Positions 3,150 through 59,891 of a DNA stretch of 64,000 nt are shown here, in pieces (position 1 is the stretch's first letter; every line of letters starts with the position of its first letter). The stretch comes from Dendrobates tinctorius (taxonomy: Eukaryota): assembly GCF_039654945.1 (NCBI RefSeq), contig NW_027361688.1:53134001-53198000 (forward strand). Direction: 5' to 3'. Made by a program: the position numbers and the translations under genes. The notes under the pieces were generated by a model. The model did not search any database and was not told the DNA's origin. It was given only the letters and a program-made list of their open reading frames with translations.

Positions 3150-3430
3150 ATCTTAAATCCTTCTTCTAAAATGTGTAGAGAATAATCATCATCCCATCAA
3201 TCCAAGTGTGTGAGCAGCAAAAATATAAATCCTAGGAACGGGAAAATCCTGGTTTTCCTGCATTGAAATCATCTGCAGGGCTCTCATCGGAGCAGCAGCT
3301 CTTCTTTGTGTGAGAGACGATGGGAGGGTGAATCACTGAGCCAGGGGGAGGAGAGCGCAGGGCTGATATGTGTAAGTCTAGACCAGTATAACAGCTTCAC
3401 TAGATGACAAGACTTCCCTCTCCTGGTCAA
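3150..3430 (-). promoter_or_regulatory. Promoter/5'UTR of exon #1 with CGCT box (~3354-3357) and CTCF-like motif (3413-3426)
   Basis: ~220 bp nearly identical upstream of all 7 ATGs; minus-strand CCAGGAGAGGGAAG. Confidence 0.65.
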
Positions 3431-4044
3431 TTCTGAAAAGTACAGTTTGAAATCCTTGCCGTGTAAAACAAAAGTCATTGATATTTTATGATTTTTTTGT
3501 ATTTCACATTTTTATGACCTCATTAAAAAAAGTAACTGCTTTGTAATATACTGACTATAAACGGTCAAGGTAACACAAGTAATACTTCAAAATGAAGCTA
3601 AACAACTTTAAAACATCAGTAAAATCTTTCCATATTTTATGATAATTTATATTTAGATATTCCCACTTGCATATTAGATACAAATAGTGTCCAAATAAGC
3701 AGAAGTGAAGGGATACTGGAGGATCTGTGGGACCTCATATTAGGTTTAACAACTTTTCTTTCCCTTTCCGAGGCCTTATATTCACGTAAAATATTGAACT
3801 CCAACATTCCTACATCAGATTGGAGTAAAGATAAATTCTAACTGCCTGAGATGTGCTTTTCCTAATGTCCATCTCACGCATATGATGGGAATGCAATAAT
3901 ATTGGATGGCTCTATAGTGATGCTCCAGATATAATTAGCAGAATTTATGGTAGTGTAATGAACCCAGAGCCAAAAACATGAATTAAAAAATTGGATAATA
4001 TTTAGGGTCCTTGGATCAACAACCCTAGTTTACCATCGAGAATC

Positions 4045-4578
4045 CTATTGACCTACAAGGCCATCTACAACCTGTCTCCTCCATATGTCTCTGAACTAAT
4101 CTCCCGATACCTTCCCTCACGTAATCTCCGGTCCTCCCAAGACCTCCTTCTCTCCTCCACACTTATTCATTCCTCACCCAACCACCTCCAAGACTTCTCC
4201 CGAATATCCCCCATCCTCTGGAATTCTTTGCCCCAACATGTCCAACTATCAACCACATTCGGATCCTTCAAATGGAACCTGAAAACTCACCTCTTCAAGA
4301 AAGCCTAAAGCCTGCAATGACCCCGCTACCTCCTCACCACTACCGGAGATTTCACCTCAACCAACACCGGAACTGCTGTAACCCATCAACCTACTGTCTC
4401 CTTCCCCACCATCCTGCAGCATGTAAGTCCAAAAGGGCAGGGTCCTCTCTCCCCTCTGTATCAGTCTGTCATTGTAAGTTTGTTTACTGTAAGTGATATC
4501 TATAATTTGTATGTAACCCCTTATGTACAGCACCATGGAACCAATGGTGCTATATAAATAAATAATAATAATAATAAT
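4045..4578 (+). mobile_element. L2-type LINE 3' fragment
   Basis: ORF2 C-terminus-like TYKAIYNLSPPY...LWNSLP...FK..LKTHLF, followed by an (AAT)n tail. Confidence 0.75.
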
Positions 4579-4759
4579 CCTACTATTTTCGCCCCTCTAC
4601 ACTAACCTAACTTTCCCTTTCTAGGCCTGTAACTGAACATTTGATGATGGCAGATAACGGCAGATAACTTTTGCCTCCACATTAAATTAGAGGAATTTTT
4701 TTTGGTCTTATGGCATATATAGAAATAGCAAAATATGGCATTCACTAGATACTCTTTAA

Positions 4760-7820: not shown

Positions 7821-8018
7821 TAATCCAACACAGAATTAAACTATGTCATTATCTTCTATGCACAATATTATAGCAATAAATATTATCCAAGAATAAAAAT
7901 TAAAAAGTTTTAAAAATGTATACTGGCCAGAAATATATGTTTTATCAATGGAAAACATAGATACTGTACATGGGTAGAAGATGAGAAAAGAAGAGTAGCA
8001 GACCTATTCAAGCTACTG

Positions 8019-9287: not shown

Positions 9288-11218
9288 AGGGAACCTGACA
9301 CATCCTTTTTCTATATGAAATTGCTCCCAATGTCCAATGTCTTGCTAGTGATCCAATGTGCAACATAAACATAGTCTTCTTAAGCTAAATTTCCAATGAT
9401 TTATCTAAAAGCCCAATTTTTATCCTTAGGTGATTGCATCACATACCTTTTCTTTCAGTTATAGGGGTGGCGCTTTCTGTCCGTCCAGTCATGGTCCTCT
9501 TTAAATTATTCACGCCCATTGCAGCCTGACTGATAGCCCAGACTGCCCCGATGTCACAACAATCACCCGGTAAATTCCACTCTTGCACAGTGATTATCAG
9601 GCCCTTGTACATGCGCACTGAATTTGGGTGTATGTCCTCAGCTTTGTCACGTGCCCCGTCCTGAGTGACATGGCCAGCAGGCCAGTAACTGATACAACAG
9701 GACGCGGCACGTGTAAATGTCCTATGTGACGCAGCCCGCAGGCCGGTAACTAATACAATAAGACAAAGGGAATAGGGAAAACCTGGGTAACAATAACAAT
9801 GGTGGCCCTGCGATAGGGAAACAGGGAAGTGGAGACCTCCTGCACTCCCCTGAGTCAGTGTCTCTACACTCCTAACGTTCCCTAGGCCGGTTCCGCACCG
9901 GGCGCCGATCAGGAACCTAAAAACCCTGACTCGCCCTGCACCTAAACCCTCACTAGGGAATTGGTCGGTGCGGAAACTTATCCCACCACTGCACTAAACA
10001 CACATAAGGAAAAGTGACAAAGCAGGGGAACACCACTTAGCTTTGCTCTGTTGCTTACGCTCCCAGCAACAGAGCCCACCACCTGCGTGCATCTTTTCCT
10101 CCACCGTGTCCGACATCTGGGTGCACTGTCCAGAAATGGATCTTCACAGCACCATAGTGCAGCCTTGGAGCAAACAGAGTCCACACCTGCGTGCAGCTGT
10201 CCAAAAACAGAGTTCCGCAAATGAGTCCAGCTTTTCTGCCAAAAAGTCCAGCATACTTGAGTCCAGCTCTCAGCAACAACCTCCAGCATTTTGAGTGCAG
10301 CTCTACACCATAGCTGCCACTCCACCAATCCATGCACGATCTCCTTGCTGACACCATAGCTGCGACTCCACCACGCCATGCCAGCCCTCCTTGCAGACAC
10401 CATAGCTGACACTCCAGGAATCTCACTGAGTTGCCCATGACTCTCCTTTAGCTCCATCCTTCACCCAAGCTTGCTTGCAAATGAATACCTTATCTCCAAC
10501 AGTGATTAACACACCTAATACTCTCTTATAGAGATACCACACCTGTTACATAATTACGTGCACAAACTATGGTAACCAAAGTGCAATGACCCTAATGGCC
10601 ACCGGGGGGAAAACTACAACTGAAATCACCACAGTGCAATGACCCTAATGGCCACTGGGGGCAAAACCACCTTTGGCACACAGCCAAGGGAAAAAAAGGT
10701 TACTTTGTGCATTTACTCTGTCAGATCCAACCTGGATCATGACAAGCTTCATTTCATATCTGCACATGCTCCAGAATCAGTAGCTAGGTGATGTATGCAT
10801 TGTGAGCACACACACTATGTGTGGCACTCTGTTCCTGCAGCTCTCGAGCATGCACAGGTATGAAATGAAGCTGTGGACGTGCAACATCTTTACGCATGCA
10901 CGGAGACCTGAGAGTGTGCAAGCGCAAAATATACTGGGCAACTGCAATGACATCGGAACAATCCAGGCAATCAAGCTGTGATGGGAGTGAATAATTTGAA
11001 GAGGACCATGACTGACCATGACTAGTAGGATAGAAAGCGCCACCCCATGACCGAAAGAGAAGATACTGTATGTGATGCAATCACCTAAGGACAAAAGTGT
11101 TTTTTTTTTTTAAATAGATAGTGGGACGTTTTGCTTGAGAAGATCATGTTAGTGATGGACATTGCATCACTAGCAAGACATTAAGGGCAGTTCAATATCA
11201 TAAAAGGTCAGGTTCCCT
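9288..11218. mobile_element. T2/Kolobok-type MITE interrupted by a solo LTR
   Basis: TTAA-AGGGAACCTGAC...GTCAGGTTCCCT-TCAA; arms ~9420-9520 and ~10980-11092 are inverted copies. Confidence 0.65.
9645..10744. mobile_element. Solo LTR (Gypsy-type)
   Basis: TGTCA...TGACA ends with 5-bp TSD AGCTT (9640-9644, 10745-10749). Confidence 0.7.
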
Positions 11219-12394: not shown

Positions 12395-14839
12395 CTGATT
12401 AGCTTCATTTAACCAATTTGAGTTAGAAGAAGGATTTGTATGTTCAACCATACCAGTTACACGTTGATCATCTAGTGATCGAGTCAAAGAAAAATTAGGA
12501 ATATCTGTAGTCGGAGGGAAACAAACTGGATAACAAGACCCCGGAGCCTCTGGTGGAGCCATCCGCACCTCCATGTACTTCAGGGTCCCATCAGTGTTCA
12601 GGTAAAGGGTTGGCTTGTACTGATCCATGTAGGATGTAGAAAGGGATTTGTCGGTGAAGCAGAATCCACACCCAGAATCATAATTCTTTCTGAGGCACCG
12701 GACAAGTAATATAGAAAATGTGACCAGAAAAACTGCACTGATGGCCACAAGGGAGACAATTAGATACAGAGTCAGGTCTGGAGCAGATTTGGCATTAGTA
12801 AGAAAATCTTGAGATTTAGGACTTTCCTGAGCAACAGAGTCTAATATATTCACAATGATGGTGGCTGTAGTGGTCATAGAGGGTTCTCCATGGTCACTGA
12901 TGGCAATCACAAGTCGCTGTTCGGTGTTATCCGTCTCATGTAAACCTCGGAGAGTCCTGACCTCTCCTGTGTATTCAGAGATGTGGAATAAAGCAGGACT
13001 GGCAGACTGAACAAGACTATAGAGGAGCCAGGCATTGTGCCCAGAATCCACATCCACGGCAGACACCTTACTGACTAAATACCCAGCAGCTGCAGATCTC
13101 GGGATGGTCTCCTGAGCAATGGTCTCCGCTGTGTTCTCCGGGTATAAGATAGTGGGAGGGTTGTCATTTGTATCCAGAAAAAATATGAAGACGGAAACAT
13201 TGGAGGATAATTTTGGAGATCCAGAATCTTCCACTCTCGCTGTGATCTGCAGAACCTGGAATTGTTCATAGTCAAAAGACCTTTGTGCATAAATATTCCC
13301 GGAGTCAGAGTTAATATAAACGAAGGAAGAGACGGGAGAACCGTGGATGTGGCTCTCAGTGATGGAGTAAATGAGGTTTGCATTAGCTCCCTCATCTGGA
13401 TCTACAGCAGATACCGTACATAACAGTCTGCCGGCCTCATTGTTTTCTGGTGTGAAGGCATTGTACACATTGTGCAGAAATGCTGGAGGATTATCATTAA
13501 CATCAGAGATATTAAGGCTGATTGTAATCTGACTGCTGAGAGACGGAGACCCCAGATCTGATGCCTTCAGTATAATGGTATATTGTGAGCGCTTCTCCCT
13601 GTCCAGATGTCCACTAGTGACCAGAGCGTAACGCTGTGACATGGGCTGGATTTTAAAAAGTAAATTTGGTGACACATCCATTTTGATTTCACCATTATTA
13701 CCAGAATCTCTATCTCTGACTGTGATGAATCCAACCACTGTTCCTATGGGGGCATTCTCAGGAACCGCAGTATTTTTAGATATAAAATTAATTTCTGGAT
13801 TGTTATCATTGACATCTTCTATTTCCACCTGAACAACACATCGCCCCTCTAATTTGGGAGAACCGTTGTCTGCTGCTGTGACAGACAATTCAAAAAGCTT
13901 TGATCCCTCAAAATCTACATCCCCTTTAATAAATATTTCTCCAGTCTGTGGGATTAAATTGAATATCTGTTTGGCCGAATTTAAAGTATGGTGATCAAAC
14001 GAATATAATATTTCTCCATTTGGTCCCTCATCTAAATCTGTAGCATTCAACTTTATAACAATTGTTTTTAACGGAATATTTTCGAATAATTTTATTTTAT
14101 AATGTGACTGATCAAACACTGGAGGATTATCATTAATGTCTAAAACACGAACAGTTATCAGCGTAGATCCTGATCTGGCTGGATCTCCCCCATCTATAGC
14201 AGTGAGAATAAGCTGGTGCTCTGCTTTCTCCTCTCTATCAAGACTTTTTTCCAACACTAATTCAGCAATGAGGGTCCCAGCCTTACGGCTTGTAACAGAC
14301 AATGAAAAATATGGATTTGGAATTAATGTATACCGAGTGACACCATTAAGCCCAACATCTAAATCCTGTGCAATCTCTAAAGGAAAATGCACACCTGGAG
14401 TTGTTAATAGCTCAGTAATATTAACTACTTGATCTTTGTTGGAAAATATTGGAGAATTATCATTAATATCCAGAACGTCTATCTCCAGACTGTGCAGCTC
14501 CAGAGGATCCTCAGCCACAGCCTCTAAATGCAGCACACAGCTCAGGCTGGATCCACACAGGCTCTCCCTATCAATCCTCTCATCTACCACCAGAGCTCCA
14601 TTCTTCTGCTCTATAGAGAATAATCTGCTGTTTCCTTCTGATCCCAAACTCAGTCTCCTTCTCCTGATATCAGCCAGATTCACCCCCAGATCCTGAGCCA
14701 CGTTCCCCACCACAGTCCCCGGATGAGACTCCTCAGCCACAGAATAACGCAGCTGCCCAGAGACCCAGCCCCAGCTACAAAGGAGAAGGGAGAAAGCTAC
14801 TTGCCATTTCCAAGCCTTCACAAAGCTCTGATTGTCCAT
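12395..14839 (-). CDS. PCDHGC5-like: Protocadherin gamma C5-like variable exon #2
   Basis: ORF 12383..14839, same architecture; donor CAG|GTGAGA at 12395/12394. Confidence 0.93.
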
Positions 14840-15120
14840 ATCTTAAATCCTTCTACTAAAATGTGTAGAGAATAATCATCATCCCATCAATCCAAGTGTG
14901 TGAGCAGCAAAAATATAAATCCTAGGAACGGGAAAATCCTGGTTTTCCTGCATTGAAATCATCCGCAGGGCTCTCATCGGAGCAGCAGCTCTTCTTTGTG
15001 TGAGAGACGATGGGAGGGTGAATCACTGAGCCAGGGGGAGGAGAGCGCAGGGCTGATATGACTGGGTCTAAATCAGTATAGAATCTTTACTGGATGACAA
15101 GACTGCCCTCTCCTGGTCAA
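14840..15120 (-). promoter_or_regulatory. Promoter/5'UTR of exon #2; CTCF-like motif 15103-15116
   Basis: Shared 220-bp block; minus-strand CCAGGAGAGGGCAG. Confidence 0.7.
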
Positions 15121-16087: not shown

Positions 16088-18405
16088 TTCGTATACATTT
16101 TTTTATTGAATAAATTTTTCGCAATAACAAAATATAACAACGAAAAAAGAAAAAAACGTTATATTCACTACAAATCTAATGCAGGTTCAGTATTCTGTAA
16201 AATGATGACATCACAGATATCATTTTCCATTGTTTCCATACAGAAAATTAAAGGATGTCTCAAACACAGAAGCAATAAAGCTAACAAAGCAGTGCATAAT
16301 TTCCTTTCTCAGAACCGTATAAAAACAAAAAAGAAAGATAAGGAGGAGGGGATGGGGGTGTAGGGGAAACTCATCCCACCTGCCTCTAAAGACCAAATCA
16401 CACACTCAGTATGACTCACCCCTCTTCAGCCGATATCCAACCCTATTTGGCCGGGGCAGCTTTAGTTCTCTAATCGAATAACTCCCAAATCATTTTTAAG
16501 GTTTTCTGTTAAGTACCATCTCGTTGAGGAGAAAGGTTCAACTATCTTTTGTCTCTCTTCAGCATTACAAAATTTACCAATAAATTGTTTCCATTTTAAT
16601 AAAAATTTCCCTGCTTTTGTCTCTTTTCTTCATAAGTGCATCTCATTGCTCTACCACCATAAAGTGATGCAATTGGGCCATCAAGTCAGATAACAAAGTG
16701 GTAGAAGGACTAAGCCAGTGCTTGAGGATCAACTTTCTAGCTAAGATTAGAATGGTATGCAAAAGTTTTGGAGGGCCCCCGTATCCACAACCCCCACCTC
16801 CCCAAATCTTCCCAGGAGTGAGATCGCCAATGTTAACGTCAGCGGTGTTATGTTACTCCACAATTTGCCTAACAAACTCGAAATTGATACCCAGTATGAG
16901 GCAATAGATTTACATGACCATAATCCATGCATCAGGTCCGATCTAGGAAGCTGACTCCTGGGGCATGCAACAAGATTATCAGAGCTATGATCCAATCTAT
17001 GAATATTAAAAGCGTATATAGCTCCATCCATAATTTTGAATTGAGTCTCCCTCCAAGACTCATTAATTATGTGTTTCCGGAAAAGAAACCAACCATTTCC
17101 TGATCCTGGAAAGTGCCTCAACATTATCCAAATGTAGATTCCAATATTTTTAAAAAGTATCTGGGTAAGGACTCAACAAATCCGGATTCATTATAGAGTT
17201 GATTGTGGAGATCGAAGGGTTCCCCATAGGATGCTGGAGTAACTCATCCAGGACGTTGCGATTCGCTTCACATCTGACATCCTGTAAATTTGTCATGATC
17301 GAAAGCCTAATCTGTAGGTATTGAAAACAATGTGAGGATTTCAGTGGATGCTTTTCAAGCAATTCAGAGCACGTCAACCATCTAAGTTCTGACAGTGGAG
17401 GAGGTGAGAGACATTAGAAATATTTTTCTGTCACCAGGTAATGAATAGTTTGTTCTCCATACCTTGAGGGAATTCGGGGTTTGCCCATAGTTTTAGATAT
17501 TTAGAGATTCTATGAGGGAGGTTATATTTCTTCCTCACCGCCTTCCATGTTGAAATCGTATCTCTGAATAAAGCTGATTTTTTAAAATAAGGAGGGAGAG
17601 AGGAGAGATGAGAGTGAAAAATTGCAGCTATATCAAATACCCGCTTGGGAAGGGGATATGATTTCAGGAAGAATCACCGCCAATCTGTCCGCCATTATTT
17701 TTGAGATTAGTTTAATATCTGTGTTGATTAACAAAATAGGTCCATAAGAGGACGGGTGCGTAGGGTCTTTACCAGGCTTCAAGATTAGTTTGAAATTTGC
17801 CCTATTGGCTGAGGGGAACAAGGGATCGCCATTTAGAATTTTATTAGTCAATTGTTCCATGATTGGTATGATCTCCAGGTGAGAAGTTTAAAAAATTCGG
17901 CAATATAGCTGTCGGGTCTGGGGGCCTTATAGTTTTTTGATTTATTAATAACAGAGATTATCTCCTCTCTGGAGATTGGTTTATTAAGAAACAATTTTTG
18001 CTCCTTTGAGAACAATGGCATGGCTACCTTATACAGTAGTGTATGATAGGTCATGTTTGGGGTATTGGGCTCACTGTGAAGTGCTCCATAGTATGATCCA
18101 AGGATATTGTTGATCATCAGGGGGTCAGATTGGATTGTTCCTGAAGGATCTTTTAGCTGGTAAATCTTTTGTTGTGGTCTGATCCCCATGGTCAGATTAG
18201 CCAACACCCTACCGGCTTTGTTTCCAAGTCTATAAAAAAAAATCTCTCTTTGAGATAAGAACAATTTCTCCCTCATCTCCCCCTGGTGGCTTAATTCTGC
18301 CACCAATGCTCCTTGTTTGTTGTAGATGGATCCGTAAGAAAGGATGTATAAGCCAATATGAGCTCTGCCTTTAACTCCCTGTATCGTTTCAAAATGCGCT
18401 TCCTG
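16088..18405 (-). mobile_element. Decayed L1/Tx1 LINE, 5'-truncated with an internal RT deletion
   Basis: ORF2 remnants (GNKAGRVLANL, LILKPGKDP...YGPILLINTDIK); 17-bp TSD TTGCATTGAATGTTTTT at 16071-16087 and 18406-18422. Confidence 0.85.
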
Positions 18406-18852: not shown

Positions 18853-19874
18853 TGGATCACCCGCCAGGGCAGTGGGGTACTCGGTACTGGGCCGGTATCT
18901 CAGAGGGAAGTGTCACAGTAGCAGTGACCCAGTCCGTGGCCCTGGGCATCCATGTAAAAGGGGTTGAGCATTGCTGATTAAAGTTTATAAGTGGATGATA
19001 GGTGATGCCACCTGTGGTGATCGGCAATGAAGGGGTTAAGCCGACGATGCAGGCAGCTCCTCTGGGACAGATGGTATAAGGCAGCAAGTTGTAATAGCTC
19101 CTCACAGGTGGAGCTGTGGTCCCAGGGCAGTGGTAATAGGTGTTGAGGAAGAGGGTGTAGTGTCTGGCGCAGAGATGTAGCAGTGCTGGAGGGTTTGCAG
19201 GAAGAAGGCAATGACACAACAGGGTGCACTTTCCGTTGCCTTTACTGTGCTTTGTAAGTGCAGTCCAGGGTCCAGATTACAGATGGAACAGAGGCTGGTC
19301 AGCTTGGAAGCAACTTAGGAATCTCTCTATGCAGATGGGTTGTGTAGTCTCCTTTCTAGCGCTTTCTGGGGTACTTGTAGTACTGTGTTACACTGAAGTT
19401 CCACTTGCTTATTCTCTTTTAGAACTCCCTCGTATGGCAGACAGCTGTAGACTCCTTCTGGCTCACATGTTGCTGTTGTGCCTCTGAGTCTTATGTGGGA
19501 ACAGAGCATTTACAGCTTCCTATTCCTCTGGTTTCTGCTGCAGGAACATCAGTATCCATACAACCTTGGAGACCTGACTCCAGACCATGCGCTACAGCTA
19601 GAAGTGAGCCTGAACTCTGCTCAATCCTCCAGCTCGTCTCCTCACATCCACACACTTTTCCCTCCTCACACGAACTAATTTCCCCTTACTGGCCCCCAGA
19701 GAGCAGCTCTTCCCCCAGTTTTGGTGCAGAGCTCCCTCTGCTGGCCTGGAGTGGGAACTGTGCTGTGTGTTGTATTTAACTGATAGAGACCTTTCATTGC
19801 TTCCAGGCATGACATCACACTCCCTAGGAGGAAGGTAATGCCACTGTGGCGACCATACTCCTGGGGGCGCCACA
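18853..19874 (-). mobile_element. Probable solo LTR (Gypsy-type)
   Basis: Minus strand TGTGGCGCCCC...GGGTGATCCA; degenerate 4-bp TSD (TCAC/TAAC here, TATC/TAAC in the duplicate). Confidence 0.55.
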
Positions 19875-21682: not shown

Positions 21683-24118
21683 CTGATTAGCTTCATTTAA
21701 ACCATTTGAGTTGGAGAAAAGATCTGTGTGTTCAACTATATCAGTTGCAATTGGATCATCTAGTGATCGAGTCAAAGTAAAACCTGGAATATCTGCAGGA
21801 GGGAAGCAAGCCGGGTAACAAGACCCCGGAGCCTCTGGTGGAGCCATCCGCACCTCCATGTACTTCAGGGTCCCATCTGTGTTCAGGTAAAGGGTTGGCT
21901 TGTACTGATCCATGTAGGATGTAGAAAGGGATTTGTCAGTGAAGCAGAATCCACACCCAGAATCATTATTCTTTCTATGGCACCGGACAAGTAATATAGA
22001 AAATGTGACCAGAAAAACTGCACTAATGGCCACAAGGGAGACGATAAGATACAGGGTCAGGTCTGGAGCAGATTTGGCATTTGTAAGAAAATCTTGAGAT
22101 TTAGGACTTTCCTGAGCAACAGAATCTAATATATTCACCATGATGGTGGCTGTAGTGGTCATAGAGGGTTGTCCATGGTCACTGACCGCAATCACAAGTC
22201 GCTGCTCCGTGTTATCCGTCTCATGTAAACCTCGGAGAGTCCTGACCTCTCCTGTGTATTCAGAGATGTGGAATAAAGCAGGACTGGCAGACTGAACAAG
22301 ACTATAGAGGAGCCAGGCATTGTGCCCAGAATCCACATCCACGGCAGACACCTTACTGACTAAATACCCAGCAGCTGCAGATCTCGGGATGGTCTCCTGA
22401 GCAATGGTCTCCACTGTGTTCTCCGGGTATAAGATAGTGGGAGGGTTGTCATTTGTATCCAGAATAAATATGAAGATGGAAACATTGGAGGATAATTTTG
22501 GAGATCCAGAATCTTCCACTCTCGCTGTGATCTGCAGAACCTGGAATTGTTCATAGTCAAAAGACCTTTGTGCGTAAATATTCCCAGTGTCGGAGTTAAT
22601 GTAGACGAATGAAGAGATGGGAGAACCGTGGATGTGGCTCTCAGCGATGGAGTAAATGAGGTTTGCATTAGCTCCCTCATCCGGATCTACAGCAGATACC
22701 GTACATAACAGTCTGCCGGCCTCATTGTTTTCTGGTGTGAAGGCATTGTACACATTGTGCAGAAATGCTGGAGGATTATCATTCACATCAGAGATATTAA
22801 GGCTGATTGTAATCTGGCTGCTGAGTGACGGAGACCCCAGATCTGATGCCGTCAGTATAACGGTATATTGTGAGCGCTTCTCCCTGTCCAGATGTCCACT
22901 AGTGACCAGAGCGTAACGCTGTGACATGGGCTGGATTTTGAAAGGTAAATTTGGTGACACATCCAGTCTAATTTCACCATTATTACCAGAATCCTTATCT
23001 CTGACTGTGATGAATCCAACCGCAATTCCTATGGGGGCATTCTCAGGAACCTCATTAGTCTTGGAGGTGAAAATAATTTCAGGGGTGTTATCATTTACAT
23101 CTTTTACTTCAATCTGGATAACACAATACCCCTCTAATCTAGATGAACCTTTGTCTGTTGCTTTGACATACAATTCATAAAAATCTGAATCTTCAAAATC
23201 CAATGTATCTGCAGTTATTATTTCATTAGTTTTTGAATTTATTTGAAATATCCTTTTTGCAGAATCCAAAGTATGGTGATCAAAGGAATATGAGATGTCG
23301 CCATTTGCACCTTCATCTAGATCTGTAGCATTTAATTGTATGATAACAGAGTTTAATGGAATATTTTCTAAAACGCTGATCCTATAACTGGGCTGATGAA
23401 ACACAGGAGCATTGTCATTAATGTCTAACACGTTTACAGTTATCTGTGTAGACCCTGATTTCGGAGGATCTCCCCCATCTATAGCAGTGAGAATAAGCTT
23501 ATGTTCAGCCTTTTCCTCCCTATCAAGGCTCTTTTCTAACACAAGCTCAGTAATGAGGGTCCCATCCTTACGATGCTTTGTAAGCAGAGAAAAATAGGGA
23601 TTGGGGTTTAATTTATATTGATTTATACCATTTTTACCCACATCTAAATCTGTTGCTGTTCCTAATTGAAACCTTACTCCAGGAATAGATTCTGTAATAT
23701 TTATAATTGTATTGATGCTAGAAAATATTGGAGAATTATCATTAATATCCAGAACGTCTATCTCCAGACTGTGCAGCTCCAGAGGATCCTCAGCCACAGC
23801 CTCTAAATGCAGCACACAGCTCAGGCTGGATCCACACAGGCTCTCCCTATCAATCCTCTCATCTACCACCAGAGCTCCATTCTTCTGCTCTATAGAGAAT
23901 AATCTGCTGTTTCCTTCTGATCCCAAACTCAGTCTCCTTCTCCTAATATCAGCCAGATTCACCCCCAGATCCTGAGCCACGTTCCCCACCACAGTCCCCG
24001 GATGAGACTCCTCAGCCACAGAATAACGCAGCTGCCCAGAGACCCAGCCCCAGCTACAAAGGAGAAGGGAGAAAGCTACTTGCCATTTCCAAGCCTTCAC
24101 AAAGCTCTGGTTGTCCAT
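21683..24118 (-). CDS. PCDHGC5-like: Protocadherin gamma C5-like variable exon #3 (probable chimera)
   Basis: ORF 21671..24118; donor CAG|GTGAGA at 21683/21682; nearly identical to exon #4. Confidence 0.93.
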
Positions 24119-24400
24119 ATCTTAAATCCTTCTTCTAAAATGTGTAGAGAATAATCATCATCCCATCAATCCAAGTGTGTGAGCAGCAAAAATATAAATC
24201 CTAGGAACGGGAAAATCCTGGTTTTCCTGCATTGAAATCATCCGCAGGGCTCTCATCGGAGCAGCAGCTCTTCTTTGTGTGAGAGACGATGGGAGGGTGA
24301 ATCACTGAGCCAGGGGGAGGAGAGCGCAGGGCTGATATGACTGGGTCTAAATCAGTATAGAATCTTTACTGGATGACAAGACTGCCCTCTCCTGGTCAAT
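24119..24400 (-). promoter_or_regulatory. Promoter/5'UTR of exon #3; CTCF-like motif 24382-24395
   Basis: Nearly identical to the exon #2 promoter, including the distal part; CCAGGAGAGGGCAG. Confidence 0.7.
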
Positions 24401-31258: not shown

Positions 31259-33694
31259 CTGATTAGCTTCATTTAAACCATTTGAGTTGGAGAAAAGATC
31301 TGTATGTTCAACTATATCAGTTGCAATTGGATCATCTAGTGATCGAGTCAAAGTAAAACCTGGAATATCTGCAGGAGGGAAACAAACTGGATAACAAGAC
31401 CCCGGAGCCTCTGGTGGAGCCATCCGCACCTCCATGTACTTCAGGGTCCCATCTGTGTTCAGGTAAAGGGTTGGCTTGTACTGATCCATGTAGGATGTAG
31501 AAAGGGATTTGTCAGTGAAGCAAAATCCACACCCAGAATCATAATTCTTTCTATGGCACCGGACAAGTAATATAGAAAATGTGACCAGAAAAACTGCACT
31601 GATGGCCACAAGGGAGACGATAAGATACAGAGTCAGGTCTGGAGCAGATTTGGCATTTGTAAGAAAATCTTGAGATTTAGGACTTTCCTGAGCAACAGAG
31701 TCTAATATATTCACAATGATGGTGGCTGTAGTGGTCATAGAGGGTTCTCCATGGTCACTGACGGCAATCACAAGTCGCTGTTCCGTGTTATCCATCTCAT
31801 GTAAAACTCGGAGAGTCCTGACCTCTCCTGTGTATTCAGAGATGTGGAATAAAGCAGGACTGGCAGACTGAACAAGACTATAGAGGAGCCAGGCATTGTG
31901 CCCAGAATCCACATCCACGGCAGACACCTTACTGACTAAATACCCAGCAGCTGCAGATCTTGGGATGGTCTCCTGAGCAATGGTCTCCACTGTGATCTCT
32001 GGGTATAAGATAGTGGGAGGGTTGTCATTTGTATCCAGAATAAATATGAAGACGGAAACATTAGAGGATAATTTTGGAGATCCAGAATCTTCCACTCTCG
32101 CTGTGATCTGCAGAACCTGGAATTGTTCATAGTCAAAAGACCTTTGTGCATAAATATTCCCGGTGTCGGAGTTAATGTAGACGAATGAAGAGATGGGAGA
32201 ACCGTGGATGTGGCTCTCAGCGATGGAGTAAATGAGGTTTGCATTAGCTCCCTCATCCGGATCTACAGCAGATACCGTACATAACAGTCTGCCGGCCTCA
32301 TTGTTTTCTGGTGTGAAGGCATTGTACACATTGTGCAGAAATGCTGGAGGATTATCATTAACATCAGAGATATTAAGGCTGATTGTAATCTGGCTGCTGA
32401 GAGATGGAGACCCCAGATCTGATGCCGTCAGTATAATGGTATATTGTGAGAGCTTCTCCCTGTCCAGATGTCCACTAGTGACCAGAGTGTAACGCTGTGA
32501 CATGGGCTGGATTTTAAAAGGTAAATTTGGTGACACATCCAGTCTAATTTCACCATTATTACCAGAATCCTTATCTTTTACTGTGATGAATCCAACCACA
32601 ATTCCTATGGGGGCATTCTCAGGAACCTCATTAGTCTTGGAGGTGAAAATAATTTCAGGGGTGTTATCATTTACATCTTTTACTTCAATCTGGATAACAC
32701 AATACCCCTCTAATCTAGGTGAACCTTTGTCTGTTGCTTTGACATACAATTCATAAAAATATGAATCTTCAAAATCCAATGTATCTGCAGTTATTATTTC
32801 ATTAGTTTTTGAATTTATTTGAAATATTCTTTTTGCAGAATCCAAAGTATGGTGATCAAAGGAATATGAGATGTTGCCATTTGCACCTTCATCTAGGTCT
32901 GTAGCATTTAATTGTATGATAACTGAGTTTAATGGAATATTTTCTAAAACGCTGATCCTATAACTGGGCTGATGAAACACAGGAGCATTGTCATTAATGT
33001 CTATTATGTTTACAGTTATCTGTGTGGACCCTGATTTCGGAGGATCTCCCCCATCTATAGCAGTGAGAATAAGCTTATGTTCAGCCTTTTCCTCCCTATC
33101 AAGGCTCTTTTCTAACACAAGCTCAGTAATGAGGGTCCCATCCATACGATGCTTTGTAAGCAGAGAAAAATAGGGATTGGGGTTTAATTTATATTGATTT
33201 ATACCATTTTTACCCACATCTAAATCTGTTGCTGTTCCTAATTGAAACCTTACTCCAGGAATAGATTCTGTAATATTTATAATTGTATTAATGCTAGAAA
33301 ATGTTGGTGAATTATCATTAATATCCAGAATGTCTATCTCCAGACTGTGCAGCTCCAGAGGATCCTCAGCCACAGCCTCTAAATGCAGCACACAGCTCAG
33401 GCTGGATCCACACAGGCTCTCCCTATCAATCCTCTCATCTACCACCAGAGCTCCATTCTTCTGCTCTATAGAGAATAATCTGCTGTTTCCTTCTGATCCC
33501 AAACTCAGTCTCCTTCTCCTGATATCAGCCAGATTCACCCCCAGATCCTGAGCCACGTTCCCCACCACAGTCCCCGGATGAGACTCCTCAGCCACAGAAT
33601 AACGCAGCTGCCCAGAGACCCAGCCCCAGCTACAAAGGAGAAGGGAGAAAGCTACTTGCCATTTCCAAGCCTTCACAAAGCTCTGATTGTCCAT
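31259..33694 (-). CDS. PCDHGC5-like: Protocadherin gamma C5-like variable exon #4
   Basis: ORF 31247..33694; donor CAG|GTGAGA at 31259/31258. Confidence 0.93.
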
Positions 33695-33968
33695 ATCTTA
33701 AATCCTTCTTCTAAAATGTGTAGAGAATAATCATCATCCCATCAATCCAAGTGTGTGAGCAGCAAAAATATAAATCCTAGGAACGGGAAAATCCTGGTTT
33801 TCCTGCATTGAAATCATCCACAGGGCTCTCATCGGAGCAGCAGCTCTTCTTTGTGTGAGAGACGATGGGAGGGTGAATCACTGAGCCAGGGGGAGGAGAG
33901 CGCAGGGCTGATATGAGCAGATCTCCTAACAATGAATCAGAATGACATGTCTGCCCTCTCCTGGCAAC
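33695..33968 (-). promoter_or_regulatory. Promoter/5'UTR of exon #4; CTCF-like motif 33951-33964
   Basis: Shared block; CCAGGAGAGGGCAG. Confidence 0.7.
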
Positions 33969-38424: not shown

Positions 38425-40860
38425 CTGAGTGGCATCATTATACAATTCTGAGTTTGAAGAAGGTTTTGACTCCATAAATGGTTCAGTTAATTGAGGATTG
38501 TTAAAGGTTTTGCTTAAGGTAAAACCTGGAATATCTGCAGGAGGGAAGCAAGCTGGGTAACAAGACCCCGGAGCCTCTGGTGGAGCCATCCGCACCTCCA
38601 TGTACTTCAGTGTCCCATCTGTGTTCAGGTAAAGGGTTGGTTTGTACTGATCCATATAGGATGTAGAAAGGGATTTATCAGTAAAGCAGAATCCACACAC
38701 AGAATCATAATTCTTTCTAAGGCACTGGACAAGTAATATAGAAAATGTGACCAGAAAAACTGCACTGATGGCCACAAGGGAGACGATAAGATACAGAGTC
38801 AGGTCTGGAGCAGATTTGGCATTTGTAAGAAAGTCTTGAGATTTAGGACTTTCCTGAGCAACAGTGTCTAATATATTCACAATGATGGTGGCTGTAGTGG
38901 TCATAGAGGGTTCTCCATGGTCACTGACGGCAATCACAAGTCGCTGTTCCGTGTTATCCGTCTCATGTAAACCTCGGAGAGTCCTGACCTCTCCTGTGTA
39001 TTCAGAGATGTGGAATAAAGCAGGACTGGCAGACTGAACAAGGCTATAGAGGAGCCAGGCATTGTGCCCAGAATCCACATCCACGGCAGACACCTTACTG
39101 ACTAAATACCCAGCAGCTGCAGATCTCGGGATGGTCTCCTGAGCAATGGTCTCCGCTGTGTTCTCCGGGTATAAGATCGTGGGAGGGTTGTCATTTGTAT
39201 CCAGAATAAATATGAAGACGGAAACATTGGAGGATAATTTTGGAGATCCAGAATCTTCCACTCTCGCTGTGATCTGCAGAACCTGGAATTGTTCATAGTC
39301 AAAAGACCTTTGTGCATAAATATTCCCGGTATCCGAATCAATGTAGACGAATGAAGAGATGGGAGAACCGTGGATGTGGCTCTCAGCGATGGAGTAAATG
39401 AGGTTTGCATTAGCTCCCTCATCCGGATCTACAGCAGATACCGTACATAACAGTCTGCCGGCCTCATTGTTTTCTGGTGTGAAGGGATTGTACACATTGT
39501 GCAGAAATGCTGGAGGATTATCATTAACATCAGAGATATTAAGGCTGATTGTAATCTGGCTGCTGAGAGACGGAGACCCCAGATCTGATGCCGTCAGTAT
39601 AATGGTATATTGTGAGCGCTTCTCCCTGTCCAGATGTCCACTAGTGACCAGAGTGTAACGCTGTGACATGCGCTGGATTTTAAAAGGTAAATCTGGTGAC
39701 AATTTCAGCCTAATTTCACCATTATTACCAGAATCCTTATCTTTGACTGTGATGAATCCAACCACAGTTCCTATGGGGGCATTCTCAGGAACCTCATTAG
39801 TCTTGGAGGTGAAAATAATTTCAGGGGTGTTATCATTTACATCCTTTACCTCAATCTGGATAACACAATGCCCCTGTAATTTAGGGGAACCTTTGTCTGT
39901 TGCTTTTATATACAATTCATAAAACTTAGATTCTTCAAAATCCAATGTATCTGAAGCTATTATTTCATTAGTTTTTGAATTTATTTGAAATATCCTTTTT
40001 GCAGAATCCAAAGTATGGTGATCAAAGGAATATGAGATGTCGCCATTTGCACCTTCATCTCGATCTGTTGCATTTAATTGTATGATAACGGAGTTTAATG
40101 GAATATTTTCTAAAACGCTGATCCTATAACTGGGCTGATGAAACACAGGAGCATTGTCATTAATGTCTAACACGTTTACAGTTATCTGTGTGGACCCTGA
40201 TTTCGGAGGATCTCCCCCATCTATAGCAGTGAGAATAAGCTTATGTTCAGCCTTTTCCTCCCTATCAAGGCTCTTTTCTAACACAAGCTCAGTAATGAGG
40301 GTCCCATCCATACGGTTTTTAGTAAACAGGGAAAAATAGGGATTGGGGTTTAATTTATATTGATTTATACCATTTTTACCCATATCTAAATCTTTTGCTG
40401 TTTCTATTTGAAATCTTTCTCCAGGAATAGATTCTGTAATATTTATAATCGTATTGATGCTAGAAAATATTGGAGAATTATCATTAATATCCAGAACGTC
40501 TATCTCCAGACTGTGCAGCTCCAGAGGATCCTCAGCCACAGCCTCTAAATGCAGCACACAGCTCAGGCTGGATCCACACAGGCTCTCCCTATCAATCCTC
40601 TCATCTACCACCAGAGCTCCATTCTTCTGCTCTATAGAGAATAATCTGCTGTTTCCTTCTGATCCCAAACTCAGTCTCCTTCTCCTGATATCAGCCAGAT
40701 TCACCCCCAGATCCTGAGCCACGTTCCCCACCACAGTCCCCGGATGAGACTCCTCAGCCACAGAATAATGCAGCTGCCCAGAGACCCAGCCCCAGCTACA
40801 AAGGAGAAGGGAGAAAGCTACTTGCCATTTCCAAGCCTTCACAAAGCTCTGATTGTCCAT
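38425..40860 (-). CDS. PCDHGC5-like: Protocadherin gamma C5-like variable exon #5
   Basis: ORF 38389..40860; donor CAG|GTGAGG at 38425/38424. Confidence 0.93.
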
Positions 40861-41134
40861 ATCTTAAATCCTTCTTCTAAAATGTGTAGAGAATAATCAT
40901 CATCCCATCAATCCAAGTGTGTGAGCAGCAAAAATATAAATCCTAGGAACGGGAAAATCCTGGTTTTCCTGCATTGAAATCTTCCACAGGGCTCTCATCG
41001 GAGCAGCAGCTCTTCTTTGTGTGAGAGACGATGGGAGGGTGAATCACTGAGCCAGGGGGAGGAGAGCGCAGAGCTGATATTAGGAGATCTCCTAACAAAC
41101 AATCAGGATGACGTGTCTGCCCTCTACTGGTCAA
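40861..41134 (-). promoter_or_regulatory. Promoter/5'UTR of exon #5; CTCF-like motif 41117-41130
   Basis: Shared block; CCAGTAGAGGGCAG. Confidence 0.72.
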
Positions 41135-49293: not shown

Positions 49294-51714
49294 CTGATTT
49301 ACATCATTACACCAGTCTGAGTTGGATAATGGTTCACTTAATTGTGGAATATTGTCAGTTGTACTCAGTGTAAAACCTGGAATATCTGCTGGAGGGAAAC
49401 AAACCGGATAACAAGATCCTGGAGCTTCTGGTGGAGCCATCCGCACCTCCATGTACTTCAGGGTCCCATCTTTGTTCAGGTAAAGGGTTGGTTTGTACTG
49501 ATCCATGTAGGATGTAGAAAGGGATTTGTCGGTGAAGCAGAATCCACACCCAGAATCATAATTCTTTCTGAGGCACCGGACAAGTAATATAGAAAATGTG
49601 ACCAGAAAAACTGCACTGATGGCCACAAGGGAGACAATAAGATACAGAGTCAGGTCTGGAGCAGATTTGGCATTTGTAAGAAAATCTTGAGATTTAGGAC
49701 TTTCCTGAGCAACAGAGTCTAATATATTCACAATGATGGTGGCTGTAGTGGTCATAGAGGGTTCTCCATGGTCACTGACGGCAATCACAAGTCGCTGCTC
49801 CGTGTTATCCATCTCATGTAAACTTCGGAGAGTCCTGACCTCTCCTGTGTATTCAGAGATGTGGAATAAAGCAGGACTGGCAGACTGAACAAGGCTATAG
49901 AGGAGCCAGGCATTGTGCCCAGAATCCACATCCACGGCAGACACCTTACTGACTAAATACCCAGCGGCTGCAGATCTCGGGATGGTCTCCTGAGCAATGG
50001 TCTCCGCTGTGTTCTCCGGGTATAAGATAGTGGGAGGGTTGTCATTTGTATCTAGAATAAATATGAAGATGGAAACATTGGCGGATAATTTTGGAGATCC
50101 AGAATCTTCCACACTCGCTGTGATCTGCAGAACCTGGAATTGTTCATAGTCAAAAGACCTTTGTGCGTAAATATTCCCGGTGTCGGAGTTAATGTAGATG
50201 AATGAAGACACGGGAGAACCGTGGATGTGGCTCTCAGCGATGGAGTAAATGAGGTTTGCATTAGCTCCCTCATCCGGATCTACAGCAGATACCGTACATA
50301 ACAGTCTGCCGGCCTCATTGTTTTCTGGTGTGAAGGCATTGTACACATTGTGCAGAAATGCTGGAGGATTATCATTAACATCAGAGATATTAAGGCTGAT
50401 TGTAATCTGGCTGCTGAGAGACGGAGACCCCAGATCTGATGCCGTCAGTATAACGGTATATTGTGAGCGCTTCTCCCTGTCCAGATGTCCACTAGTGACC
50501 AGAGCGTAACGCTGTGACATGGGCTGGCATGTGAAAGGTAAATCTGGGGAAGCTGTGAGCTTTGTTTCTCCATTTTTCCCAGTGTCTTTGTCTCTTACAG
50601 TAATAAAACCTACTACGGTTCCTATGGGGGCATTCTCAGGGATTTCCTTATTTTTGAATACAAAAATAATTTCTGGAATATTATCATTTAAGTCTTCTAT
50701 TTCAATCTGGACACGACATCTGCCCTCAAGCTTTGGGGATCCTTTATCTATAGCTTTTATTAATAATTCATAAATAGTAGCAATTTCAAAATCCACTGGA
50801 CCTTCAATAAATACTTCACCTGTAATTGGGTTTATATCGAATATTTCCTTGGCCGAGTTTGAATTGCGTTGGTCTAAGGAATATGTGAATTCACTGTTGA
50901 CTCCCTCATCTGCATCTGTAGCTTTTAGTTTTATTATCACGGTTTTCAAAGGCACATTCTCTGGTATGTTCACCTTATAACGTGGCTGATCGAATACTGG
51001 AGCATTATCATTGATATCTAACACTATGACTGTTAGCTGAGTGGATCCGGATCTGGCTGGATCTCCCCCGTCTATGGCAGTGAGAATAAGCTTGTGCTCT
51101 GATTTCTCTTCTCTGTCTAGAATTTTTTCTACCACTAATTCAGCAATAAAATTTCCAGAATCTTTTGTTACAGATAAAGAAAAATATGGATTTGGGTTTA
51201 GTCTGTACTGACTGATACCATTAACACCTACATCAAAATCCTGTGCATTTTCCAAAGGGAACTGCACACCAGGGTTTGTAAATTGTTCGGTAATTTTTAT
51301 AATCTGATTAATGTTTGAAAAAAATGGTGAATTATCATTAATATCCAGAATGTCTATCTCCAGACTGTGCAGCTCCAGAGGATCCTCAGCCACAGCCTCT
51401 AAATGCAGCACACAGCTCAGGCTGGATCCACACAGGCTCTCCCTATCAATCCTCTCATCTACCACCAGAGCTCCATTCTTCTGCTCTATAGAGAATAATC
51501 TGCTGTTTCCTTCTGACCCCAAACTCAGTCTCCTTCTCCTGATATCAGCCAGATTCACCCCCAGATCCTGAGCCACGTTCCCCACAACAGTCCCTGGATG
51601 AGACTCCTCAGCCACAGAATAACGCAGCTGCCCAGAGACCCAGCCCCAGCTACAAAGGAGAAGGGAGAAAGCTACTTGCCATTTCCAAGCCTTCACAAAG
51701 CTCTGATTGTCCAT
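49294..51714 (-). CDS. PCDHGC5-like: Protocadherin gamma C5-like variable exon #6
   Basis: ORF 49282..51714; donor CAG|GTGAGA at 49294/49293. Confidence 0.93.
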
Positions 51715-51988
51715 ATCTTAAATCCTTCTTCTAAAATGTGTAGAGAATAATCATCATCCCATCAATCCAAGTGTGTGAGCAGCAAAAATATAAATCCTGG
51801 GAACGGGAAAATCCTGGTTTTCCTGCATTGAAATCATCCGCAGGGCTCTCATCGGAGCAGCAGCTCTTCTTTGTGTGAGAGACGATGGGAGGGTGAATCA
51901 CTGAGCCAGGGGGAGGAGAGCGCAGGGCTGATATGAGCAAATCTCCTAACATTGAATCAGAATGACGTGTCTGCCCTCTACTGGACCA
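51715..51988 (-). promoter_or_regulatory. Promoter/5'UTR of exon #6; CTCF-like motif 51971-51984
   Basis: Shared block; CCAGTAGAGGGCAG. Confidence 0.72.
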
Positions 51989-56582: not shown

Positions 56583-57051
56583 ACACCTAAATAAAATGGG
56601 AATGGTTGGTGATATCAACTCCCTGTTTGTGGCAAATTAGTATATGGGAGGGGGAAAACTTTTCAAGATAGGTGATGACCATGGCGGCCATTTTGAAGTC
56701 GGCCATTTTGGATCTAACTTTATTTTTTTCACTGGGAAGAGGGTCATGTTACACATCAAACTTATTGAGAATATCAAAGAAAAACAATGGTGTGCTTGGC
56801 TTTAATGTTTTATGTTAAAACCAAGCACACCATTGTTTTTCTTGTGAAATTCAAATAAGTTTGATGTGTTACATGACCCCTTTCCCATTGGAAAAAATAA
56901 AGATAGATCCAAAATGGCCAACTTCAAAATGCCCGCCATGTTCACCACTCATCTTGAAAAGTTTCCCCCTCCCATATACTAATGTGCCACAAACAGGAAG
57001 TTGATATCACCAAACATTCCCACTTTATTAATATAAATGGCCCACCCTGTA
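56583..57051. mobile_element. Palindromic Tc1/mariner-type MITE (left TIR eroded)
   Basis: Long inverted repeat centred near 56810; right end ATATAAATGGCCCACCCTG-TA. Confidence 0.6.
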
Positions 57052-57184
57052 TGTATGTATGTATATACTATATATTTTCTTTATATTAATAACGCATTTT
57101 TTGCAGTATTAAATGAGGTTAGAAAAAATTATCTTAATAGTATCATATGATTTGTCCATAAGATACTCATCACATCGATCTCAC

Positions 57185-59617
57185 CTGATCAGGTTCATTA
57201 CACCAGCTGCCATCAGCAATACGTTCTGGCTCCCTGATTATATCTGTGAACTGAGTCTTAGATAAAGTAGAATGTGGGATGTCTGTTACAGCAGGGAAAC
57301 AAGCCGGGTAACAAGACCCCAGAGCCTCTGGTGGAGCCATCCGCACCTCCATGTACTTCAGGGTCCCATCTGTGTTTAGGTAAAGGGTTGGTTTGTACTG
57401 ATCCATATAGGATGTAGAACGGAATTTGTCAGTGAAGCAGAATCCACACCGAGAATCATAATTCTTTCGAAGGCAGCGGACAAGTAATATAGAAAATGTG
57501 ACCAGAAAAACTGCACTGATGGCCACAAGGGAGACAATAAGATACAGAGTCAGGTCTGGAGCAGATTTGGCATTTGTAAGAAAGTCTTGAGATTTAGGAT
57601 TTTCCTGAGCAACAGTGTCTAATATATTCACAATGATGGTGGCTGTAGTGGTCATAGAGGGTTCTCCATGGTCACTGACGGCAATCACAAGTCGCTGTTC
57701 TGTGTTATCCATCTCATGTAAACCTCGGAGAGTCCTGACCTCTCCTGTGTATTCAGAGATGTGGAATAAAGCAGGACTGGCAGACTGAACAAGACTATAG
57801 AGGAGCCAGGCATTGTGCCCAGAATCCACATCCACGGCAGACACCTTACTGACTAAATACCCAGCGGCTGCAGATCTCGGGATGGTCTCCTGAGCAATGG
57901 TCTCCAATGTGATCTCTGGGTATAAGATAGCAGGAGGGTTGTCATTTGTATCCAGAATAAATATGAAGACGGAAACATTGGAGGATAATTTTGGAGATCC
58001 AGAATCTTCCACTCTCGCTGTGATCTGCAGAACCTGGAATTGTTCATAGTCAAAAGACCTTTGTGCATAAATATTCCCGGTGTCGGAGTTAATGTAGACG
58101 AATGAAGAGACGGGAGAACCATGGATGTGGCTCTCAGTGATGGAGTAAATGAGGTTTGCATTAGCTCCCTCATCCGGATCTACAGCAGATACCGTACATA
58201 ACAGTCTGCCGGCCTCATTGTTTTCTGGTGTGAAGGCATTGTACACATTGTGCAGAAATGCTGGAGGATTATCATTAACATCAGAGATATTAAGGCTGAT
58301 TGTAATCTGGCTGCTGAGAGACGGAGACCCCAGATCTGATGCCGTCAGTATAACGGTATATTGTGAGCGCTTCTCCCTGTCCAGATGTCCACTAGTGACC
58401 AGAGCGTAACGCTGTGACATGGGCTGGCATAGAAACGGTAAATCTGGTGATACAATCAATTGTACTTCACCATTTTTACCAGAATCCTTATCTCTGACTG
58501 TGATGAATCCAACCACAGTTCCTATGGGGGCATTCTCAGGAACTGCATTATGTTTAAATATAAATGTAATTTCTGGACTGTTATCATTGACATCTTCTAT
58601 TTCCACTTGAACAATACAATGTCCTTCTTGTTTAGGTGACCCTTTATCCACAGCTATGACAAACAGTTCAAAGAATTTTACAGCTTCATAATCCAGAATT
58701 CCTTTATTAAATATTTCCCCTGTGGTAGGATTTAATTCAAATATTTTCTCTGCAGCTTCTAAAGTTCGATGATCAAATGAAAAGATAAATTCACTGTTTA
58801 CACCTTCATCCAGATCACTAGCATTGAGCTTTAACACTTTTGTTTTTAAAGGTATATTTTCTCGAACACTAACCTTATATAAAGGCTGATCAAACAATGG
58901 GGAATTGTCATTGATATCTAATATAAGGACAGTAATCTGAGTGGATCCGGATCTGGCTGGTTCTCCTCCATCAATAGCGGTGAGAAGAAGCTTGTGCTCA
59001 GCTATCTCTTCTCTGTCTAGAATTTTTTCCAGCACTAATTCAGCAATGAGCGATCCATCATTGCGCTTTTTGGTGAACAATGAAAAATATGGATTTGATT
59101 TAATTGTATACTGACTGACACTATTAATCCCTACGTCTAAATCCTGTGCATTCTCTAAAGGAAAGTGTTTACCAGGACTTGTTAGTAACTCTGTCACCTT
59201 TATAATTTGATCACCACTTGGAAATATTGGAGAATTATCATTAATATCCAGAACGTCTATCTCCAGACTGTGCAGCTCCAGAGGATCCTCAGCCACAGCC
59301 TCTAAATGCAGCACACAGCTCAGGCTGGATCCACACAGGCTCTCCCTATCAATCCTCTCATCTACCACCAGAGCTCCATTCTTCTGCTCTATAGAGAATA
59401 ATCTGCTGTTTCCTTCTGATCCCAAACTCAGTCTCCTTCTCCTGATATCAGCCAGATTCACCCCCAGATCCTGAGCCACGTTCCCCACCACAGTCCCCGG
59501 ATGAGACTCCTCAGCCACAGAATAACGCAGCTGCCCAGAGACCCAGCCCCAGCTACAAAGGAGAAGGGAGAAAGCTACTTGCCATTTCCAAGCCTTCACA
59601 AAGCTATGATTGTCCAT
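57185..59617 (-). CDS. PCDHGC5-like: Protocadherin gamma C5-like variable exon #7
   Basis: ORF 57170..59617; donor CAG|GTGAGA at 57185/57184. Confidence 0.93.
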
Positions 59618-59891
59618 ATCTTAAATCCTTCTTCTAAAATGTGTAGAGAATAATCATCATCCCATCAATCCAAGTGTGTGAGCAGCAAAAATATAAATCC
59701 TAGGAACGGGAAAATCCTGGTTTTCCTGCATTGAAATCATCCGCAGGGCTCTCATCGGAGCAGCAGCTCTTCTTTGTGTGAGAGACGATGGGAGGGTGAA
59801 TCACTGAGCCAGGGGGAGGAGAGCGCAGGGCTGATATGAGGAGATCTCCTAACAATGAATCAGAATGACATGTCTGCCCTCTACTGGACAA
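59618..59891 (-). promoter_or_regulatory. Promoter/5'UTR of exon #7; CTCF-like motif 59874-59887
   Basis: Shared block; CCAGTAGAGGGCAG. Confidence 0.72.

Follow-up and report, generated by a model that had tools for sequence, protein, structure and literature searches.

Among the systems in which oriented CTCF sites direct enhancer-promoter contacts, protocadherin promoter choice has been studied best, and C-type genes that lack such a site are its built-in exception. To our knowledge, frogs have no beta cluster and a gamma-C5-type gene has multiplied instead. Here we analyze a 64-kb stretch of the genome of Dendrobates tinctorius (contig NW_027361688.1, positions 53,134,001 to 53,198,000; hereafter the window) that contains a tandem array of seven gamma-C5-like variable exons. 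Sequence comparisons indicate that these are probably seven members of a frog-wide gamma-C5-derived expansion, with each promoter carrying one predicted forward CTCF-binding site of the core CCAG-N-AGAGGGC-R. An earlier note on this DNA had suggested that this lineage may have turned a C-type gene into a stochastic-choice repertoire, independently or by retention of an ancestral state, an interpretation that is partly supported by the results below.

Variable exons in the window

Seven open reading frames (ORFs) encoding 810–823 aa are present on the minus strand of the window (Table 1). Their products match the Pfam family Cadherin_2, five more cadherin domains and Cadherin_C_2. The exons lie in tandem on one strand with a spacing of 7.2–11.7 kb, and all seven are terminated by the splice donor CAG/GTGAG. 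Being single large cadherin exons in a tandem array, each with a donor, they are clustered-protocadherin variable exons. The constant exons are located beyond the window limits, and the protein of the Phyllobates ortholog runs on into the constant region after the identical Q residue. The closest public protein to the exon 1 product is Phyllobates terribilis "protocadherin gamma-C5-like X43" (94% identity). Such gamma-C5-like paralogs number in the tens per frog genome, with NCBI names reaching X48.

The paralogs are 98–100% identical over about -228 to +360 and +1200 to +2300 relative to the ATG, 68–88% identical in extracellular cadherin domains 2 and 3 (EC2-3), and about 45–57% identical upstream of -228. 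This profile, i.e. many paralogs differing in EC2-3 with the remainder of the exon homogenised, is that expected of alternate isoforms.

A forward CTCF-type site upstream of each exon

The pattern CCAGKAGAGGGMAG, that is CCAG(G/T)AGAGGG(C/A)AG, has seven matches in the 64 kb, all of them on the minus strand, where 0 are expected from 100 shuffles. It spans -277 to -264 relative to the ATG in genes 1–3 and -270 to -257 in genes 4–7, and is always read along the direction of transcription. The placement given in the earlier note, 257–277 bp upstream of every ATG, thus holds for 7/7 genes with no further matches in the window, and the distance falls within that of the conserved sequence element (CSE) of Pcdh promoters (about 200–300 bp upstream of the ATG).

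Compared with the classical CTCF core CCASYAGRKGGCRS, three copies match exactly, three have one mismatch and that of gene 1 has two; with up to one mismatch allowed, the IUPAC core has 8 matches in the window against 0.45 expected. A position weight matrix (PWM) entered by hand after JASPAR MA0139.1 gave the seven sites 17–20.8 bits with a window-composition background. At a threshold of at least 15.5 bits, 10 sites were found in the window, including all seven promoter sites, where the null model gives 0.3 on average for 128 kb of two-strand sequence. The site of gene 1, which has A instead of the consensus C at matrix position 15, is the weakest of the seven promoter copies. The description of the motif as CTCF-like and co-oriented was therefore borne out by a strong PWM match (16–21 bits), by the consensus match and by the forward orientation of 7/7 copies, which read CCAG...GGC on the coding strand.

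Ahead of the core stands a TGG, and 6 nt upstream of this TGG a TG-N-AGTTA element is conserved, 18–19 nt upstream of CCAG (e.g. at 41149–41158). The CTCF upstream motif, CTGCAGTTTC or CAGCTGTTCC, is bound by zinc fingers 9–11 and separated from the core by a 2–7 bp linker (PMC12885311). By its letters, the frog element resembles this motif and is a plausible CTCF upstream motif at a permitted spacing. Borders of topologically associating domains in X. tropicalis carry the mammalian-derived CTCF motif in convergent orientation (PMC8270788), so that frog CTCF reads the usual motif. A second, exonic CTCF site such as that of the alpha genes was not found in the variable exons, where the only match was a weak one of 11.2 bits in gene 1.

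Four further strong CTCF-type matches lie between the genes of the window, at 18274–18292 (-, 18.2 bits), 19729–19747 (-, 20.6 bits), 28967–28985 (-, 20.6 bits) and 10596–10614 (+, 15.0 bits); three are oriented like the promoter sites and one is opposite. Those at 19729 and 28967 fall within a G+C-rich patch of a 95%-identical intergenic segment that was duplicated with genes 2 and 3. The other loci compared lack a counterpart of any of the four.

Table 1. Features of the window; coordinates are window positions, and bit scores are from the hand-entered PWM with the window-composition background unless stated otherwise
Feature	Coordinates	Strand	ATG or lowest coordinate of 14-nt core	Evidence
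Variable exon 1, coding part, ATG to CAG/GTGAG donor	717..3149	-	3149	ORF, Pfam, donor
Variable exon 2	12395..14839	-	14839	ORF, donor
Variable exon 3	21683..24118	-	24118	ORF, donor
Variable exon 4	31259..33694	-	33694	ORF, donor
Variable exon 5	38425..40860	-	40860	ORF, Pfam, donor
Variable exon 6	49294..51714	-	51714	ORF, donor
Variable exon 7	57185..59617	-	59617	ORF, donor
Predicted CTCF-type site, gene 1 (19-mer; core 3413-3426)	3411..3429	-	3413	17.0 bits; 15.8 bits with uniform background
Predicted CTCF-type site, gene 2	15101..15119	-	15103	20.4 bits; one mismatch to CCASYAGRKGGCRS
Predicted CTCF-type site, gene 3	24380..24398	-	24382	20.4 bits
Predicted CTCF-type site, gene 4	33949..33967	-	33951	18.2 bits
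Predicted CTCF-type site, gene 5	41115..41133	-	41117	20.8 bits; exact IUPAC consensus match
Predicted CTCF-type site, gene 6	51969..51987	-	51971	17.7 bits; exact IUPAC consensus match
Predicted CTCF-type site, gene 7	59872..59890	-	59874	19.8 bits; exact IUPAC consensus match
Homogenised promoter/5'-leader block, gene 1 (-1 to -228)	3150..3377	-		Paralog identity and frog alignments

Conservation of the site among frogs

Gamma-C5-like loci from six other frogs were compared: Eleutherodactylus coqui (L001), Mixophyes fleayi (L002), Nanorana parkeri (L003), Pristimantis euphronides (L004), Xenopus laevis (L006) and Ascaphus truei (L008). The same forward site was found in 16/16 of their promoters that belong to the expanded clade, giving 23/23 with the window (22 distinct sequences), at -245 to -290. 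Matrix positions 5–7 and 9–14 (CAG.AGAGGG, nine core positions) are invariant over the 23 promoters, and position 8, where the core of the CTCF matrix carries least information, can be A, C, G or T. The more informative a position is in the matrix, the more conserved it tends to be (Spearman rho 0.73); the p-value of this correlation is descriptive only, the 23 sequences being interrelated. The earlier note had viewed the expansion and its site as a trait of one lineage; both occur in all frogs of the sample, Ascaphus and Xenopus among them. In the X. laevis locus, a fifth forward CTCF-type site (14494–14512, 13.9 bits) is not followed by an intact variable-exon ORF and may mark the promoter of an exon that has decayed.

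The core varies at its 3' end, reading GGGCAG(A/T)C in the window and GGGCG(G/A)(A/T)C in Ascaphus and Xenopus; the GGGCG ending is that of Ascaphus and some Xenopus copies, and the neobatrachian core, with GGGCA, is CpG-free. In the window, CpG is absent from the 19-mer and its 3' flank in 5/7 genes, with one each in genes 5 and 6 (ACGT just 3' of the core).

A gap of about 40 bp separates the motif from the 5' edge of the homogenised block, and this spacer exists in two versions, one in genes 1–3 and one in genes 4–7, which differ by, among other changes, a 7-nt indel. It is therefore outside the block and has differing flanks, as had been noted from the sequence. In every comparison the 30–40 nt separating the site from the next conserved block have diverged, so that the site forms a conservation island. 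Judged by EC2-3, the lineages of the window paralogs are old, orthologs being present in Phyllobates, Bufo, Eleutherodactylus and Pristimantis; as these lineages extend to other hyloid frogs, conservation of the motif is not a by-product of local homogenisation. We also considered that the motif might be the fading edge of gene conversion, which is ruled out by the divergence of the spacer and by retention of the motif where the flanks cannot be aligned across species.

The homogenised block itself occupies ATG+1 to ATG+228 in window coordinates in the six genes other than gene 1. Its distal ~130 bp (ATG+95 to ATG+228; 3244–3377 in gene 1) are conserved from Ascaphus to the hyloid frogs (L001–L004, L006 and L008) and contain a C-rich box, TGGCTCAGTGA, CCCTCCCAT, GAGCTGCTGCTCCGATGA and TTTCAATGCAG; they are recognisably related to the upstream region of turtle and alligator gamma-C5, and may be either promoter or 5' leader.

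A CGCT box, which the earlier note placed at about -205, is indeed present at -208 in 7/7 window genes. As it lies inside the homogenised block, the seven copies amount to one observation and are not independent. At the same position, Mixophyes has CACT and Nanorana has TGCT or TGTT, and Xenopus and Ascaphus have no counterpart. The box was thus rejected as a conserved element, being copied within the block and not kept outside hyloid frogs.

Gamma-C5 ancestry

A maximum-likelihood tree (71 rows, 212 columns) was built from EC2-3, the part least affected by gene conversion, omitting four long-branch rows (Camelus beta-8, Enhydra alpha-10-like, Hypomesus and Collichthys). Amniote gamma-C5 and all amphibian gamma-C5-like sequences form one clade (support 100/97), outside of which fall gamma-C3, two extra sauropsid exons, alpha-2, gamma-B2 and the shark and teleost sequences. 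Nested within it is a frog-only clade of 40 rows (100/99), which holds every sampled frog sequence but one. The gamma-C5 identity claimed for the window genes thus agrees with their position inside the gamma-C5 clade (100/97), in a tree that contains no gamma-C4 sequence. As a proxy for the latter, bit scores of EC1-3 against equal-length PDB entries were compared for mouse gamma-C5 and mouse gamma-C4, respectively: window gene 1, 337 and 319; an Ascaphus exon in locus L007, 441 and 375; Rhinatrema X10, 453 and 393; and turtle gamma-C5, 500 and 416. Mouse gamma-C5 was the best equal-length PDB match of the window protein, and gamma-C5 scored above gamma-C4 in all four queries. The placement is consistent with the grouping of X. 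tropicalis pcdh-gamma2 15–36 with mouse gamma-C4 and gamma-C5 (PMC4978886). Rhinatrema, a caecilian, has about eight exons of the gamma-C5-like kind.

Some observations on the other sequences may be added. Chelydra protein P0224, named "Protocadherin gamma-C3" in UniRef, clusters with turtle gamma-C5 sequences in the tree, and its name therefore looks wrong. Turtle (L005) and alligator (L009) have two more variable exons after gamma-C5 (at 13470 and 16633 in L005, and 13469 and 16467 in L009) without a clear mouse counterpart in the PDB ranking. In the alligator locus, gamma-C3 (1833) is directly upstream of gamma-C5, with no gamma-C4 in between.

Gamma-C5 promoters without the site

Mammalian gamma-C5 is reported to have no CSE/CTCF site (PMC7811963). 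Turtle gamma-C5 (L005) likewise has no match of at least 11 bits anywhere upstream, and alligator gamma-C5 (L009) is without a site, its best match, between the CCAAT boxes, scoring 10 bits and being out of register by 3 nt. The absence of the CSE from gamma-C5, which the earlier note had mentioned, is thus reported for mammals in that review and extends to turtle and alligator. Among the frogs, the Ascaphus exon FKM82_011912 (L007, 9989–12490) is the sole one outside the expanded clade and the most gamma-C5-like frog sequence; no CTCF-type match is present in the 800 bp upstream of it.

Pairwise alignment of frog and turtle upstream regions is colinear, with z-scores of 8.5–10.8 against shuffles, and a profile search of the turtle locus with the frog promoter alignment (nhmmer) gave nothing significant. 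In a multiple alignment, amniote gamma-C5 and Ascaphus L007 and L008 have in common ATTGG, about 22 nt, CCAAT, a GGATCTGCTC element, a C-rich box and GCTGCTGC. By alignment, then, the frog and amniote gamma-C5 promoters are orthologous. In the frogs, the CTCF-type core fills the 22-nt segment that the two inverted CCAAT boxes enclose, and the same segment has no CTCF likeness in turtle and Ascaphus L007. The ATTGG...CCAAT flanks are located at 3480–3540 in L008 and at 9690–9760 in both L005 and L009; the boxes are eroded in D. tinctorius. Alligator gamma-C3 shows the same CCAAT arrangement, its boxes enclosing a segment that contains CGCT.

On the present sampling, gain and retention of the site in frogs each cost two steps. 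With a CSE-bearing outgroup, gain would mean that the site was lost once on the gamma-C5 stem and regained once in the frog expansion, and retention would mean two independent losses, in amniotes and in the line of Ascaphus L007. The dissimilarity of the Ascaphus L007 and amniote segments, together with the near-match in alligator, slightly favours independent decay. It is possible, but rather doubtful, that a gamma-C5 promoter without a CTCF site regained one in the frog stem by remodelling of the ~22-nt CCAAT-flanked segment, letting the gene expand into tens of alternate-like isoforms that replace the missing beta cluster. If this were true, the frogs would provide a natural experiment in which one oriented CTCF site turns a constitutive promoter into a choice-capable one. 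Ascaphus, turtle and alligator provide conservative gamma-C5 promoters that can be matched, as promoters without the site, to the expanded ones with it, so that the effect of a single CTCF site becomes directly testable, also with the Xenopus CTCF chromatin immunoprecipitation sequencing and Hi-C data that exist.

Comparison with known protocadherin promoters

In mammals, the alternate beta and gamma promoters have a single forward CTCF site each (PMC7811963). The frog array is similar in that every promoter has one CTCF-type site, placed a few hundred bp upstream of the ATG and forward throughout the tandem array, and in that no second, exonic site was found, as in beta/gamma and unlike alpha genes (PMC7811963). 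It differs in that the predicted frog site has no CGCT box, the neobatrachian core has no CpG and the genes are derived from gamma-C5, the mammalian promoter of which lacks the element. Since the mammalian CSE holds CGCT within the site, the frog site would be a CGCT-less variant of the CSE. Amniote gamma-C5 shares with the frog genes an orthologous coding lineage and, by alignment, an orthologous promoter, but is single copy and has no CTCF match in the segment between the CCAAT boxes.

The expanded group has been described for X. tropicalis. According to Etlioglu et al. (2016, PMC4978886), pcdh-gamma2 15–36 are an expanded C-type group forming one clade with mouse gamma-C4/C5 and having no canonical CSE; their promoters share a novel 13-bp motif, which had no match in transcription-factor databases and was left unassigned, an unknown regulator being proposed. 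The frog promoters studied here resemble those of that paper in the absence of the CSE and in a short motif conserved a few hundred bp upstream of the ATG, and the window proteins have peptides in common with gamma2_19, 26 and 27. Whereas that study dealt with one species, the present comparison extends from Ascaphus to hyloid frogs. In X. laevis, CCAG(A/G)AGAGGG(C/A) is the sole stretch of at least 13 nt common to four such promoters, and the 13-bp motif is for this reason probably the same as the CTCF-type motif. Should the logo in their Figure 4D be CCAGNAGAGGGCA, then publication of the motif would precede this analysis, and the new element would be its assignment to CTCF alone. The C-type expansion and the CSE-less promoters of X. 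tropicalis are already published (PMC4978886), and no paper tying these frog promoters to CTCF was found among those searched; new are the CTCF assignment, the spread of the motif from Ascaphus to hyloids, and its absence from conservative gamma-C5 promoters of the same architecture.

Possible function of the site and alternative explanations

By the usual convention, a forward core points the loop-facing side of CTCF to the downstream constant exons. At the frog promoters the site faces the direction of transcription and would thus look toward these exons. By analogy with the mammalian beta/gamma alternate promoters, CTCF, if it occupies the site, would stall cohesin there, and a downstream enhancer with opposite-facing sites would contact one promoter of the array; looping of this kind may contribute to promoter choice in frogs. 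If the motif is a CGCT-less CTCF site, frog diversity would be driven by the ordinary CTCF/cohesin machinery.

Several points weigh against this assignment or the role derived from it. The PWM was a hand-entered version and not the actual JASPAR matrix, and as a positive control on a CSE-type promoter it detected nothing in alligator gamma-C3, so that either the control failed or that promoter is site-less. The CTCF-type site does not include CGCT, a separate CGCT being ~60 bp away. In the CpG-free neobatrachian core, methylation could not block binding as it is thought to do at mammalian promoters. If the 13-bp motif is that of the frog promoters, its absence from transcription-factor databases, as stated by Etlioglu et al., conflicts with the CTCF assignment. 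Contigs of four public runs, whose RNA status is guessed, cover the locus only where paralogs or species are near-identical and end at the limits of the homogenised block, and therefore carry no information on transcription start or expression.

Two other explanations of the motif have to be weighed. A CTCF-type site does not by itself imply stochastic choice, because in mammals alpha-C1 and gamma-C3 are broadly expressed despite having a CSE/CTCF site. In the literature, alpha-C1 has a single CTCF-binding site, and gamma-C3 is not among the exceptions without one (PMC7811963). The frog sites may accordingly bind CTCF but be constitutive insulators or loop anchors, with the genes expressed broadly or deterministically like the CTCF-bearing mammalian C-type genes. 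Such a function would suit genes that descend from a C-type gene, and the lack of CpG in five of the seven 19-mers and their 3' flanks means that a direct methylation switch is missing at the site; in addition, expression data for frogs are at cluster level only (PMC4978886). It is less easily reconciled with the tens of paralogs per frog genome and with EC2-3 lineages long kept apart in otherwise homogenised exons, which is a pattern of recognition diversity and not of a single housekeeping isoform, and we consider it unlikely.

Alternatively, the conserved 14-mer could be the site of another factor or a core-promoter element, its likeness to CTCF being coincidental. The failure to find the 13-bp motif in databases (Etlioglu et al.) and the absence of the CGCT box from the site are in line with this, as is a conservation tighter than the matrix requires, with A and G fixed at positions 11 and 12 where CTCF tolerates G or T. 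Coincidence would, however, have to account for a strong forward match placed on the sole conserved island upstream of the block, when matches of at least 15.5 bits are expected ~0.3 times per 128 kb; for a sole variable core position that is the degenerate position of the matrix; and for a plausible upstream motif at a permitted spacing. We therefore regard a factor other than CTCF as very unlikely.

Other observations

An Rfam scan of the window matched zero families. The region 41518–41900 of the window reached a summed depth of up to ~100,000 in the public run contigs and is probably part of an abundant repeat.

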